Below are positions 10,111-49,879 of a DNA stretch of 64,000 nucleotides, in pieces; position 1 is the first letter of the stretch; every line of letters begins with the position of its first letter. Both the position numbers and the translations under genes were made by a program. The stretch lies in the NCBI GenBank assembly GCA_964035545.1, contig OZ037770.1, positions 2,572,462 to 2,636,461 of the forward strand, in the 5' to 3' direction. The notes beneath the pieces were generated by a model, which was not told the origin of the DNA, made no database searches, and saw only the letters and a program-made list of their open reading frames with translations. This DNA is from Bugula neritina. Its lineage: Eukaryota > Animalia > Bryozoa.

Positions 10111-10245
10111 TTATGGGTTAAAGCCAGGAAATAAATAGAGTTTTTTGTAGTCTGTAAAGGTACACTCATCCGTAGGTTGCTGCCCGCTGACGTTTCCGTA
10201 CATTCTATTGGCTAGTAAACTTTTGTCTCTCACTTTTTTCTTCAC
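10111..10245 (-). CDS. Last coding exon, caspase p10 C-terminus (VKKKVRDK...[23 protein letters not shown])
   Basis: Q.P and KKLYLFPG are typical caspase small-subunit C-terminal motifs; acceptor gatgtag; TAA at 10111-10113. Confidence 0.88.
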   Translation of the reverse strand: MKKKVRDKSLLANRMYGNVSGQQPTDECTFTDYKKLYLFPGFNP

Positions 10246-49200: not shown

Positions 49201-49879
49201 CGCTTTGTCAGTCAGCTCAGAAACATGTAGATGCAGGGCTTTACCAGCAATCTCTCCGATGTTGTTGGGAATTTTCCCTTTCAGTTTGAGATGTGTGATG
49301 TCATAACTCCCAACTTCAATTTTCACTTCAGCAGTAGTATATGACTTGGTATCAGCCCACCATACATCTGACCAGCTTACAGGAGGCTGACCAGAATGTC
49401 TGAACCAGATTTCCATATTCTCTGTAACATTATACAGTGTGATTATTACACAGTGCTAGCAGGTGGTGTCTCTCATTCTGACACCTGCCATCTACTGATT
49501 GAATATATAAATCTATAGTTAGGTTTCAGCCACCATATCGATACTTGTATATAGAACTAAACTACATATTCTTTGATGGCAGCTTCAGGTTTAACATAAG
49601 ATGCAAGTAAAGTATTTAAGTTCCTAAAACTAACTGCATCCTGTATAATCTTTGGAGCTCCTCCAAACTCTTGCTACCATATATTTTCCTAATGCTTGTT
49701 GAATACATAATTAGAATAAAAACTAGAACCTTCACTTAAGATCTCTAGAATTATGCTGATTGTGTTTCAATATGAAAACATCTCAAATCCTTTGTTTTAT
49801 TTATTATATACAATAAAAGATCTTAAAAGAATATTTTGAACTTTGGCAATATTTTAAAATACTCACCACCAGTTGCCAT
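10111..49879 (-). CDS. LRR-ROC-COR-caspase fusion gene (~1,280-1,300 aa). Exons: 49867-49879, 49190-49421, 48450-48587, 47818-47955, [47065-47200 skipped], 46426-46563, 42372-42509, 34996-37001, 34648-34734, 32197-32378, 19925-20092, 19354-19573, 10620-10817 (or split/shorter), 10414-10523, 10111-10245
   Basis: Every junction is GT-AG with matching phase (1,2,2,2,2,2,1,1,0,0,1,1,0); summed length 3903 nt is divisible by 3 with no internal stop; ATG has good context (ACCATGG); recognisable LRR, ROC, COR and caspase motifs occur in order. Confidence 0.8.
10414..10523 (-). CDS. Caspase p10 exon ([17 protein letters not shown])
   Basis: Aligns to the caspase G.vSwR....GSWFI motif that carries the S1 Arg341 equivalent; acceptor tacacag, donor gtgagt. 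Confidence 0.92.
10620..10817 (-). CDS. Caspase intersubunit linker and start of p10 (…[11 protein letters not shown])
   Basis: Phase-1 acceptors at 10817 and 10745 are both in frame; donor gtaagt at 10619; D.LY resembles the p10 DFL strand. Confidence 0.72.
10830..11284. repeat. 21-bp minisatellite (ACTAGATACTACAAGGTATAA)n, left part
   Basis: Direct reading; interrupted by the Gypsy element. Confidence 0.95.
11593..11610 (+). promoter_or_regulatory. Primer-binding site TGGTGGCAGCGGTGGGAT, complementary to the tRNA-Leu 3' end
   Basis: One nt after the 5' LTR; complement ATCCCACCGCTGCCACCA matches eukaryotic tRNA-Leu(AAG/UAG). Confidence 0.85.
11646..12578 (+). CDS. gag: Gypsy gag with CCHC zinc knuckle
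   Basis: [14 protein letters not shown]. Confidence 0.88.
   Translation: MQPPAVEGERRDNAVETMPVNHVVEERRVPRELTEDRYRLKAPTFTGEEKVEQFIQEFSHVMGVAQWPPRVALLKLRIALMDKAKPYGLGVDIDNIFASLRARFGLSATDARAQLQSLRRDPCTPLQKHAAAVMKLAQIAYSDLPPVNRERYTLDAFIASVDDLGLHHQFLARGVTTVEDALTEGEAYLLANQMHKSSKNSRQVEVDRADMAAGREEETSATAAVAQLATASKVTQLTDMLAKLIATLTPQTPVGTAAEPVRPPAPPPGETVSFCWECGNQGHFRKYCPFLTPGLNYRGPQMFPPLAGRR
12870..17066 (+). pseudogene. pol: Gypsy pol (protease [19 protein letters not shown], RNase H TDAS, integrase HHCC/DDE/GPY) broken by stops and frameshifts
   Basis: ORF fragments 13022-13738, 13675-15141, 15250-15813, 15756-16148, 16206-17066. Confidence 0.92.
17346..18160 (+). pseudogene. Accessory ORF3 of Gypsy 1: C2H2-like zinc finger, CPCG, RS/P-rich stretch, coiled coil; one internal TGA
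   Basis: [21 protein letters not shown]...FCPCG; the frame continues past TGA 18021-18023 as LQAEFTQL...RIKRKLR. Confidence 0.65.
18758..19350. repeat. 21-bp minisatellite, right part, abutting the splice donor of the catalytic exon
   Basis: Same unit; source of the spurious YKLDTTR and LYLVVSS ORFs. Confidence 0.95.
19354..19573 (-). CDS. Caspase catalytic exon (ALVIMTHG...GTD...[16 protein letters not shown])
   Basis: Catalytic His (THG) and Cys (QACSG) within the GKPK..QACxG signature; donor gtaagt. Confidence 0.95.
19925..20092 (-). CDS. Caspase p20 N-terminal exon ([20 protein letters not shown]...RDGSEMD...F..L.F.....DLT)
   Basis: Classic Y.M...RG.CLIINN..F....R.GS..D motif; missing from the ORF track; phase 0/0. 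Confidence 0.93.
20100..20232. repeat. 11-bp tandem repeat (TAGTAATATAC)n next to a splice acceptor
   Basis: Direct reading. Confidence 0.85.
21344..24149. mobile_element. Non-autonomous hAT-like foldback element with ~430-bp inverted arms and an AT-only core
   Basis: 25-bp TIR CAGTGTGGTATATTTAAGAGTGTTG; 8-bp TSD CATCCCCC (21336-21343 and 24150-24157); the LTR sequence resumes after it. Confidence 0.88.
21777..23710. repeat. (TA)n-derived AT-only array with higher-order repeats
   Basis: Recurring landmarks TACAAGTATAATAATATT and ATC(C/A)TATAAAA every ~240 bp. Confidence 0.85.
28394..29141. mobile_element. Non-autonomous DNA transposon (CMC/EnSpm-like MITE) inserted in Gypsy 2 pol
   Basis: TIR CACAGGATAGTTAAGGGCA; 2-bp TSD TC, inferred from the uninterrupted paralog ttcttctcag at ~53831. 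Confidence 0.8.
32197..32378 (-). CDS. Acidic linker exon between COR and caspase
   Basis: Acceptor cactacag, donor gtgagt; phase 1/0 bridges the flanking exons; coding-like composition. Confidence 0.75.
33119..34434. mobile_element. Non-autonomous Tc1/mariner (pogo-like) element
   Basis: TIR GGGGTAACGGGGGCACA (right copy has an expanded C run); TA on both flanks; internal CCGGGGCACAATGG repeats. Confidence 0.75.
34648..34734 (-). CDS. Short helical exon after COR ([28 protein letters not shown])
   Basis: Acceptor gtttag, donor gtaaac (the same donor as YARS1 exon 4); phase 1/1. Confidence 0.65.
34996..37001 (-). CDS. Large exon: last LRRs, ROC GTPase and COR domain (ROCO family)
   Basis: LRRs then LTFPP.EV...G..AV..Y; P-loop GNTMAGKTS; G3 DMGGQEVY; G4 FTHKD; COR motifs P..W, L.YMHD.GKVLWY, YFIIP. 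Confidence 0.95.
38174..39744 (-). mobile_element. TRIM-like non-autonomous LTR element; 395-bp LTRs at 38174-38568 and 39350-39744; ~780-bp noncoding interior
   Basis: TG...CA LTRs; tRNA-Leu PBS 39331-39348; purine tract; flanks ATAC/ATAT; interior 38950-39314 is homologous to Gypsy 2 at 24720-25078. Confidence 0.9.
39895..40176. repeat. (TA)n microsatellite
   Basis: Direct reading. Confidence 0.97.
40290..41672 (-). mobile_element. 5'-truncated Penelope-like retroelement (RT C-half plus C-terminal GIY-YIG endonuclease)
   Basis: Frame from ~41670 to 40591 reads FGLYRDD...VNYLDI...SNHPP...WYNPPFS...CNCR...CPLDGKC...IIYQA...YVGTS...FKTRLYNH...RCNLCL. Confidence 0.9.
40310..40354 (-). ncRNA. 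Minimal type I hammerhead ribozyme in the PLE 3' region
   Basis: acac-CUGACGA-gugcag(uuua)cuguac-GAAA-cuauauag-UC-gugu: full core, stems I and II, palindromic stem III, GUC cleavage triplet. Confidence 0.85.
41921..41971 (+). ncRNA. Second, variant minimal hammerhead ribozyme
   Basis: uuuau-CUGAAGA-u-ugugua...ugcaca-u-GAAA-cuaguag-UA-auaaa; stem II closes with a U.U mismatch. Confidence 0.55.
42372..42509 (-). CDS. 138-nt LRR exon F ([45 protein letters not shown])
   Basis: Two 23-aa LRRs; symmetric phase 2/2. Confidence 0.88.
43078..46396 (-). mobile_element. Degenerate Academ-like DNA transposon inside the LRR exon array
   Basis: TAGTCTG...CAGACTA termini; ~150-bp imperfect TIRs ending CAAGATGGCCGCCA; 3-bp TSD AAA; decayed transposase-like fragments at 44195-44815. 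Confidence 0.75.
46426..46563 (-). CDS. 138-nt LRR exon E ([45 protein letters not shown])
   Basis: Two 23-aa LRRs; symmetric phase 2/2. Confidence 0.88.
47065..47200 (-). pseudogene. 136-nt frameshifted LRR pseudo-exon D
   Basis: Paralog of the 138-nt exons with a 2-nt deletion (ggtagtgttgag vs ggtactgtgttgag); if included it reads ...[17 protein letters not shown]. Confidence 0.82.
47818..47955 (-). CDS. 138-nt LRR exon C ([45 protein letters not shown])
   Basis: Two LRRs; phase 2/2; donor gtgagt. Confidence 0.88.
48450..48587 (-). CDS. 138-nt LRR exon B ([45 protein letters not shown])
   Basis: Two LRRs; phase 2/2; overlaps ORF 48380-48568. Confidence 0.88.
49190..49421 (-). CDS. N-terminal/LRR-cap exon ([14 protein letters not shown]...[14 protein letters not shown]...KASLN)
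   Basis: Acceptor ttacag (phase 1), donor gtgagt (phase 2), fitting both neighbours. Confidence 0.75.
49867..49879 (-). CDS. Putative start-codon exon (MATG)
   Basis: gtaaccATGGCAACTGGTG|gtgagt; phase 1 matches the next acceptor. Confidence 0.62.

Follow-up and report, generated by a model that had tools for sequence, protein, structure and literature searches.

The DNA analysed here is a stretch of 64,000 nucleotides (nt) from the bryozoan Bugula neritina (contig OZ037770.1, positions 2,572,462 to 2,636,461 of the forward strand; hereafter the window). On its minus strand, from 49879 to 10111, lies a gene that very probably joins leucine-rich repeats (LRR), a Roc GTPase domain, a COR domain and a caspase in one protein. 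The gene spans ~39.8 kb, of which 3.9 kb are coding. The product that best explains its exons is likely a ROCO protein of ~1290 residues, consisting of an N-terminal cap, ~11 LRRs, Roc, COR-A/B, a linker of ~90 residues and the caspase subunits p20 and p10. An earlier sequence-only reading of the window had claimed one gene with LRR, Roc-COR and an intact caspase; the exon structure, the splice chain of the paralogs, the RefSeq models and the predicted fold of the largest exon show that this claim is most probably right.

Evidence for a single gene

Searches were made with single exons or with stored homologues, and scripts gave the lengths, phases and per-exon translations. The window has a GC content of 31% and contains no runs of N. 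A human origin was rejected on this GC content and on its bryozoan-like relatives, which indicate the Bugula group through the Bugula neritina protein KAF6026298.1 and JGI contigs with up to 80% identity. In our own reconstruction, 14 exons with GT-AG boundaries throughout run without an internal stop over 3879 nt, equal to 1292 codons and a TAA at 10113-10111. Exactly this number of minus-strand exons in one frame had been given by the sequence-only reading, and it was recovered with an additional LRR exon copy at 47200-47065 left out. The single open frame holds only when this copy is skipped.

The largest exon (34996..37001, minus strand like all exons described here; 2006 nt) holds the last ~3 LRRs, Roc with its P-loop and COR-A/COR-B, and ends in phase 1. 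It is connected to the caspase exons by linker exon A (linkA, 34648..34734; 87 nt, phase 1-1, no ATG) and linker exon B (linkB, 32197..32378; 182 nt, phase 1 to 0). The first of the three joins, 34996>34734, has the donor CCAT/GTATGT and the acceptor TTTAG/GT in phase 1; the second, 34648>32378, has AATA/GTAAAC and ACAG/AG, also in phase 1; the third, 32197>20092, has TCG/GTGAGT and CACAG/GTG in phase 0. The sites and phases proposed for these joins in the sequence-only reading were thus correct, and they are conserved in paralogs. With the 136-nt LRR exon copy skipped, the splice sites are canonical and the phases compatible from COR through both linkers to the caspase. GT-AG sites abound, so in-frame joins carry little weight by themselves; the comparison with relatives gives strong support.

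Relatives were collected in three ways. A length-unrestricted protein search with the Roc-COR exon as query gave 111 clusters (50% identity) at E<1e-30, and the full-length relatives came from this search and from another with the Watersipora protein P0028 as query. A length-limited search with the Roc-COR exon gave only metagenome open reading frames (ORFs) of single-exon size, comprising 22 paralogs with 37-73% identity. JGI metagenome contigs of samples 3300002729 and 3300003318 contain 20 or more paralogs whose identity to the window is 37-80%. The long matches, which carry LRR, Roc/COR and Peptidase_C14, come from RefSeq and belong to the bryozoan Watersipora subatra. At least 12 proteins of this species include the caspase, for example XP_067947674.1 with 1419 amino acids. 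Three predicted proteins of the same architecture were found in amphioxus, two in Branchiostoma belcheri and one in Branchiostoma floridae (C3XQ16/XP_002614028.1, 1609 amino acids), the last from the draft annotation with BRAFLDRAFT locus tag. Bugula neritina itself has a partial model, KAF6026298.1. These sequences point to a multigene family that is expanded in bryozoans to tens of paralogs and whose architecture is also found in amphioxus.

More than 10 full-length Watersipora LRR-Roc-COR-caspase proteins are colinear with the LRR exons, the large exon and the caspase exons of the window. The last three caspase exons (C3, C4 and C5) are part of such colinear tblastn matches, C3 with P0151, P0152, P0154 and P0155. 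On the COR side, homology to the Watersipora proteins ends at 34991-34997, which is the claimed donor, and not at the stop at 34967 that is reached by reading through it.

The joined exon chain is also conserved in the genomic DNA of relatives. The COR exon, linkA, linkB and the caspase exons lie on one strand in six paralogous loci (L001, L003, L004/L005, L006 and L007), where the COR exon and the caspase are only 0.85-2 kb apart (~850 nt from COR to C1, the first caspase exon, in L006); in L001 the chain reaches only C1, at the contig end. The window, L001, L003, L004, L006 and L007 share their splice positions and the phases 1, 1, 0, and L002 confirms the first join. The codon split at the COR donor codes for Cys in the window and in the same five loci. 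A counterpart of linkA, a phase 1-1 exon of 87-105 nt located 125-260 nt behind the COR exon, is present in L001, L002, L003, L004, L006 and L007, and linkA is without ATG in the window, L001, L003, L004 and L007. In the DNA alignment, linkA is free of gaps and its flanks have large ones. LinkB has homologous sequence in L001, L003 and L004 as well as in the linker of Watersipora P0046 (residues 589-646). Its acidic part is conserved, and in L003 and L006 no in-frame ATG precedes this part within the open stretch; there it is thus translatable only from upstream exons.

Scanning the metagenome contigs with an alignment of the second caspase exon (C2) revealed 50 loci. In L017, L018, L022 and L034 the Roc-COR exon precedes C2 by 1.6 kb. 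Another four contigs, each from its own sample (L016, L023, L027 and L028, from Ga0314675, Ga0314698, Ga0314700 and Ga0314709; 98% identical) hold the N-terminal region, LRR, Roc-COR and linker in one open frame. At the site of the 12-kb intron of the window they have an AT-rich GT..AG segment of 280-300 nt, and then the caspase follows. Although its length varies from contig to contig, taking this segment out brings the frame back at phase 0. These contigs contain a distant family member, either as complementary DNA (cDNA) with a retained intron or as an intron-poor gene; either way they support a single gene.

The LRR-Roc-COR part

The 2006-nt exon is, by its predicted fold, an LRR-Roc-COR unit. 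Pfam found LRR_8 and Roc, the latter with 29.8 bits (cutoff 27); its COR-A match was weak, with 16 bits. Because COR-A scored below its cutoff, the COR assignment rests on profile and fold evidence. The Roc motifs, including the P-loop and THKD, are readable in the exon, so that the GTPase domain has its G1, G3 and G4 motifs. In an alignment of 54 sequences, positions G104, G109, K110, S112, T139, D158, G160, G161, T227, H228 and D230 of Roc are nearly invariant. A profile of the family matched CtRoco, LRRK1 and LRRK2 in the PDB, and its positions 2-400 aligned with residues 581-975 of LRRK1.

An AlphaFold2 model of the exon had a predicted local distance difference test score (pLDDT) of 89.5 and a predicted template modelling score (pTM) of 0.87. 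The top Foldseek matches of the model were LRRK1 (8e05), the LRR-Roc-COR structure of Chlorobium tepidum (6hlu), LRRK2 and a structure of COR only (3dpt). All structural matches were ROCO proteins and small GTPases, the 6hlu and 8r4b families among them, with 13-15% identity to the solved structures. Roc and COR are contained in one exon, COR coming immediately after Roc in the encoded chain. The Pfam search of this exon returned Ras-like GTPase families only and neither a NACHT nor an NB-ARC ATPase.

Ahead of the large exon, four LRR exons of 138 nt, each in the symmetric phase 2-2, lie at 48450..48587 (LRRa), 47818..47955 (LRRb), 46426..46563 (LRRd) and 42372..42509 (LRRe). LRRa codes for 2 LRRs and belongs to a tandem exon family with a spacing of 632-755 bp; together the four exons supply 8 LRRs. 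Their translations differ from each other at the x positions of LxxLxLxxN, and such symmetric exons allow changes in copy number. They are preceded by E2 (49190..49421; 232 nt, phase 1 to 2), which codes for the N-terminal region and has its own in-frame ATG at the third codon. E2 has no Pfam match; it matches the N-terminal region of the Watersipora proteins P0152 (residues 45-121) and P0154 and that of the paralogous loci L004, L005, L006 and L027. The putative first coding exon E1 (49867..49879; phase 0 to 1) reads ATG GCA ACT GGT G before a GTGAGT donor and codes for MATG only; it is unverified. The N-terminus of the relatives has ~45 residues of low complexity.

The caspase part and its linker

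The caspase is encoded by five exons. C1 (19925..20092; 168 nt, phase 0-0) contains the start of p20 with the first Arg of the P1 pocket, and C2 (19354..19573; 220 nt, phase 0 to 1) contains the catalytic His (IMTHG) and Cys (QACSG). C3 (10620..10793; 174 nt, phase 1-1) comprises an intersubunit linker and the start of p10, C4 (10414..10523; 110 nt, phase 1 to 0) the p10 core with the second P1-pocket Arg, and C5 (10111..10245) ends with the TAA. The p20/p10 fold was recognised when C1, C2 and C4 were searched singly: Peptidase_C14 matched C1 at profile positions 1-49 (E 2e-10), C2 at positions 63-130 (E 2e-11) and C4 at positions 169-208. The nearest solved relatives of C2 are CED-3, caspase-2, caspase-8 and caspase-3.

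The catalytic dyad appears complete, with IMTHG and LQACSG in C2 and both His and Cys invariant in the C2 alignment. The pocket for Asp at P1 is represented by KRDG in C1, QAC in C2 and STRH in C4. These residues were placed through the alignment of a homologue with caspase-3, whose pocket residues are R64, Q161 and R207. GTWFIRAL and the C-terminal KKLYLFPG are also readable in the caspase exons. By sequence, the caspase part is therefore of the animal type (C14A) and apparently catalytically complete, and the window protein has the tested defining features of both ROCO proteins and C14A caspases. A bacterial origin of the caspase was ruled out, since its nearest solved structures are CED-3 and caspases.

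The distance from QACSG to the p10 core is ~48 residues. Long intersubunit linkers are typical of initiator caspases such as caspase-8 and caspase-9. The linker of the window protein resembles these, in keeping with activation by induced proximity. Between COR and the caspase, linkA and linkB encode ~90 acidic, Asp-rich residues that are probably disordered. The sequence-only reading had found no CARD or DED prodomain for the caspase, and the same result was obtained here: at E values up to 1, Pfam matched no CARD, DED or Death domain on linkA, linkB or the other exons, and none is present in the full-length Watersipora relatives. The N-terminal prodomain that marks death-fold initiator caspases is thus missing from the exons searched.

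The active site varies among paralogs, whose C2 matches lie at 5549-5776 in L003, 13270-13503 in L004, 13079-13303 in L006 and 4998-5219 in L007, and also in L008-L057. The pentapeptide occurs as QACSG, QACAG, EACSG, EVCSG, ETCSG, HACSG and EACSE, with Cys always kept. L003 has HACSG, L006 has ETCSG and L007 has EACSE. In some paralogs the P1-Asp pocket is altered, as in L004, where EVCSG is accompanied by SKIH and the p10 Arg is gone. Part of the family may, judging from these residues, have a changed P1 specificity or consist of pseudo-proteases.

Alternative explanations

Several observations weigh against a functional single-gene ROCO-caspase. The Pfam score of Roc is barely over its cutoff and that of COR-A is under it. 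E1 has no support from homology: the N-termini of relatives and the DNA upstream of paralogs were searched against 49.4-64 kb of the window and gave nothing significant. The 47200-47065 exon copy combines intact splice sites with a frameshift. The sense-oriented retrotransposon in the 12-kb intron described below, or another element 0.9 kb upstream of the proposed start, may impair expression. LinkB contains an in-frame ATG at 32373, and an extra caspase-only transcript from an internal promoter there is possible. The proposed fusion is built on genomic exons, paralogs and predicted models, the RefSeq models being predictions themselves.

The alternative that survives best is that the gene is a ROCO-caspase by descent and that this copy is decaying to a pseudogene or yields only non-productive mRNA, through the frameshifted LRR exon and ~18 kb of retrotransposon. 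The exon copy in question (47065..47200) is 136 nt long owing to a 2-nt deletion; it reads CTCAACAC--TACCAGAAG, whereas the other LRR exon copies read CTCAACACAGTACCAGAAG. Its AG and GT sites are the same as those of the neighbouring, presumably functional LRR exons, and its inclusion puts stops into every later exon. It is either a skipped pseudo-exon or the cause of a non-productive mRNA.

The locus measures ~40 kb because its two largest introns are mostly transposon (~18 kb of Ty3/Gypsy type); in paralogs the introns are compact. LinkB and C1 are separated by a 12.1-kb intron, most of which is a Ty3/Gypsy-type long terminal repeat (LTR) retrotransposon at 20754..31702 on the minus strand, in sense to the gene. 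Its LTRs (20754-21053 and 31403-31702) are 96% identical, its internal ORFs have RVT_1 and rve Pfam matches, and it encloses an AT-rich satellite. A second element of this type, at 11285..18750 on the plus strand and antisense to the gene, is inserted in a 21-nt minisatellite in the 8.6-kb intron between C2 and C3, which consists nearly entirely of minisatellite and transposon. It also has an LTR pair of 96% identity, and matches RVT_1, RNase H and rve. The intronic elements are thus young, and a related element is located at 51.9-54.9 kb, near the proposed start. The failure to find an N-terminal exon equivalent to that of the relatives in 49.4-64 kb, and the turnover of copies expected in a large family, also agree with decay. 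However, the 14 other exons all have an open frame and canonical motifs, and QACSG and GTWFIRAL of this copy are the most canonical among close paralogs, which have EVCSG, ETCSG, EACSE or HACSG. Moreover, the frame survives the skipping of an exon of the symmetric 138-nt class, and transposons are common in the introns of functional genes. A poorly expressed or decaying state of this copy is therefore a real, if minor, possibility.

It is distinctly less probable that the caspase is not an autonomous initiator activated by induced proximity. It would then be a regulatory or decoy module, or an effector-type protease freed by cleavage of the acidic linker, and Roc-COR would serve only as a scaffold or localisation device. 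The variation of paralogs before the catalytic Cys and at P1-pocket residues suggests that some family members have an altered Asp specificity or have lost it. Asp is also frequent in the linker, and caspase-3, an effector caspase, is the best-scoring match of the caspase domain of Watersipora P0028 (residues 1120-1419). In contrast, the window copy retains the His, both Arg residues and QACSG, no copy has a change at the catalytic Cys, and the long intersubunit linker is initiator-like, as in caspase-8 and caspase-9.

Least probable is that two adjacent genes are involved, a ROCO gene ending at the in-frame stop past 34996 or after linkA and a short-prodomain caspase gene starting at the ATG at 32373, with coincidental joins. 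The stop met on reading through the 34996 donor (34969-34967), the start of linkB (..EEMNRPPP) with an ATG ORF at 32373, the in-frame ATG that L001 and L004 also have, a few codons ahead of the linkB acceptor, and the annotation of several Watersipora relatives without caspase (P0023, P0025, P0032 and P0034) would fit two genes, but they are outweighed by the conservation of linkA as an internal phase 1-1 exon without ATG in six further loci, by the conserved acidic motif of linkB that has no upstream ATG in L003 and L006, by the phase triplet 1, 1, 0 retained in six diverged copies (by chance ~1 in 27 per copy), by the gap of just ~850 nt in L006, by the RefSeq and amphioxus models that join both parts, and by the end of homology exactly at the donor.

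Introns and neighbouring sequence

The AT-rich satellite inside the LTR-element intron extends over 21800-23650, and GC falls to 5.6% over 22-24 kb. The 21-nt minisatellite has more than 40 copies at 10733-11427 and 18632-19350; it reaches up to the donor of C2 on one side and the acceptor of C3 on the other, and the LTR retrotransposon interrupts it. A third Gypsy-type copy, at 51900-54900 on the minus strand, is 81-90% identical to the copy at 25.4-31.3 kb and lies at least 0.9 kb upstream of the proposed start. LTR-like sequence was also noted at 24736-25035, 38972-39271 and 38172-39647, including fragments in the intron before the Roc-COR exon.

The intron from LRRe to the Roc-COR exon contains an open stretch of 365 codons at 40594-41688 (minus strand) without Pfam match, followed by a Cys-rich ORF at 40591-40998. 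The latter may resemble the GIY-YIG end of Penelope-like elements. On the minus strand beyond the caspase stop, exons at 966-1241 and 2981-3271 match class I Tyr/Trp-tRNA synthetases (Pfam tRNA-synt_1b). With ..ADLHAYLDN.. and KMSSS they look like those of a cytoplasmic tyrosyl-tRNA synthetase.

Discussion

The arrangement of domains suggests how a single-gene ROCO-caspase could work. The LRR array would be the sensor of a ligand or of a guarded host state, and Roc-COR would be a nucleotide-dependent switch of conformation and oligomerisation. A change in Roc-COR self-association would let two caspase domains meet and be activated by induced proximity, with neither a CARD/DED adaptor nor a STAND platform. 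Activation would lead to cell death or to cleavage of substrates, either in immune defence or when the colonial animal reacts to self and non-self. Caution is due with the premise of the sequence-only reading that nucleotide-controlled dimerisation of ROCO proteins goes through COR: in work on the Roco protein of Chlorobium tepidum (PDB 6hlu and 8r4b families), the monomer is reportedly favoured by GTP binding, and the switch could thus run in either direction. From the architecture and the family expansion only, a role as self-contained inflammasome or apoptosome in immunity or allorecognition is a reasonable inference.

The window protein was compared with known systems. Nearest to it in architecture among animal proteins are MFHAS1, which has no effector, and LRRK1, LRRK2 and DAPK1, whose effector is a kinase. 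Human MFHAS1 (MASL1) has LRR, Roc and COR in common with it, and bryozoan and amphioxus relatives are named 'MFHAS1 homolog' in RefSeq. The C-terminus of MFHAS1 lacks a caspase and any other enzymatic domain; the window protein, likened to it by architecture, has an acidic linker and a complete caspase in addition. LRRK1, LRRK2 and DAPK1 have the Roc-COR tandem after LRRs and, similar to the window protein, place the GTPase switch beside an effector enzyme in one chain. Among solved structures, LRRK1 (8e05) and LRRK2 match best, with ~650-720 aligned columns, and the profile match extends into COR-A. The window protein differs from these three in having a cysteine protease instead of a kinase and in the absence of ankyrin, armadillo, WD40 and death domains.

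The predicted Watersipora (for example XP_067947674.1) and Branchiostoma (C3XQ16; B. belcheri LOC109465244) proteins have the same architecture and domain order as the window protein. Their Roc-COR parts are 29-38% (Watersipora) and 22-28% (amphioxus) identical to it, and the number of LRRs differs.

Apoptosomes and inflammasomes (Apaf-1 with caspase-9; NLRC4 or NLRP with ASC and caspase-1) are alike in the proposed principle, in which sensor repeats and an NTPase switch lead to a proximity-activated caspase. Unlike them, the window protein has no STAND ATPase and no CARD, PYD or DED; sensor, switch and protease form one covalent chain for which no adaptor would be required. Because the defining features of death-fold initiator caspases and STAND platforms are lacking, the resemblance appears to be functional and not familial.

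The nearest known fusions of a ROCO module with a caspase-type protease are bacterial. In bacterial LRR-AP-GTPase-COR proteins, caspase is among ~24 C-terminal effector domains (PMC8195603), and the Runella protease of a study on bacterial gasdermin cleavage is named Roc-COR-CHAT (bioRxiv 10.1101/2021.06.07.447441). Such bacterial ROCO-proteases share the domain order of the window protein, with a ROCO module over a caspase-superfamily protease, and have been assigned to systems of conflict or defence (PMC8195603; bioRxiv 10.1101/2021.06.07.447441). The LRR-Roc-COR of the window also has the C. tepidum Roco (6hlu) as a top structural match. In contrast to the bacterial proteins, its protease is of the animal type C14A, not CHAT or a bacterial orthocaspase, and the gene is eukaryotic with introns.

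The sequence-only reading had known of no characterised animal protein with this architecture, and had named many annotated animal proteins with it as what would remove the novelty. The search for paralogs and orthologs that it proposed has now returned fused models in Watersipora and amphioxus and paralogous loci in metagenome contigs. With at least 12 annotated proteins in Watersipora, 3 in amphioxus and 1 partial one in B. neritina, part of the claimed novelty is gone. All relatives are uncharacterised predictions under generic names ('MFHAS1 homolog', 'SHOC-2', 'uncharacterized'). A description of an animal ROCO-caspase was not found in searches of open-access literature, where absence is weak evidence; most results were LRRK2 papers, and the bacterial precedents were the only useful ones. 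In our judgement the architecture is not unknown, being present in databases unremarked; it is that of a ROCO protein in which the effector has been exchanged, and it corresponds in animals to the ROCO-proteases of bacteria.

A broader idea is offered tentatively, and we think it somewhat more likely to fail than to hold. These proteins might form a third animal machine for caspase activation, made of single-chain, adaptor-free, GTP-gated receptors in which a fast-evolving LRR array drives caspase dimerisation. Their expansion in bryozoans would serve immunity or allorecognition, and the machine would be parallel or related to the bacterial Roc-COR-protease defence that triggers gasdermin.

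The ROCO module in people is known mainly through LRRK2 (Parkinson's disease), DAPK1 and MFHAS1. If our explanation is true, this module would directly gate a death protease, and caspase activation in some animals would need neither CARD/DED adaptors nor an ATPase of the NLR or Apaf-1 type. It would offer a simple, testable model in which the nucleotide state of Roc-COR leads to effector activation, and it would link the animal cell-death machinery to bacterial ROCO-protease defence systems. Bryozoan immune genes are, to our knowledge, almost unstudied. The family would provide candidate receptors for immunity or for colony self/non-self recognition in bryozoans, and as its members are already in public protein sets under uninformative names, their study would be possible at once.

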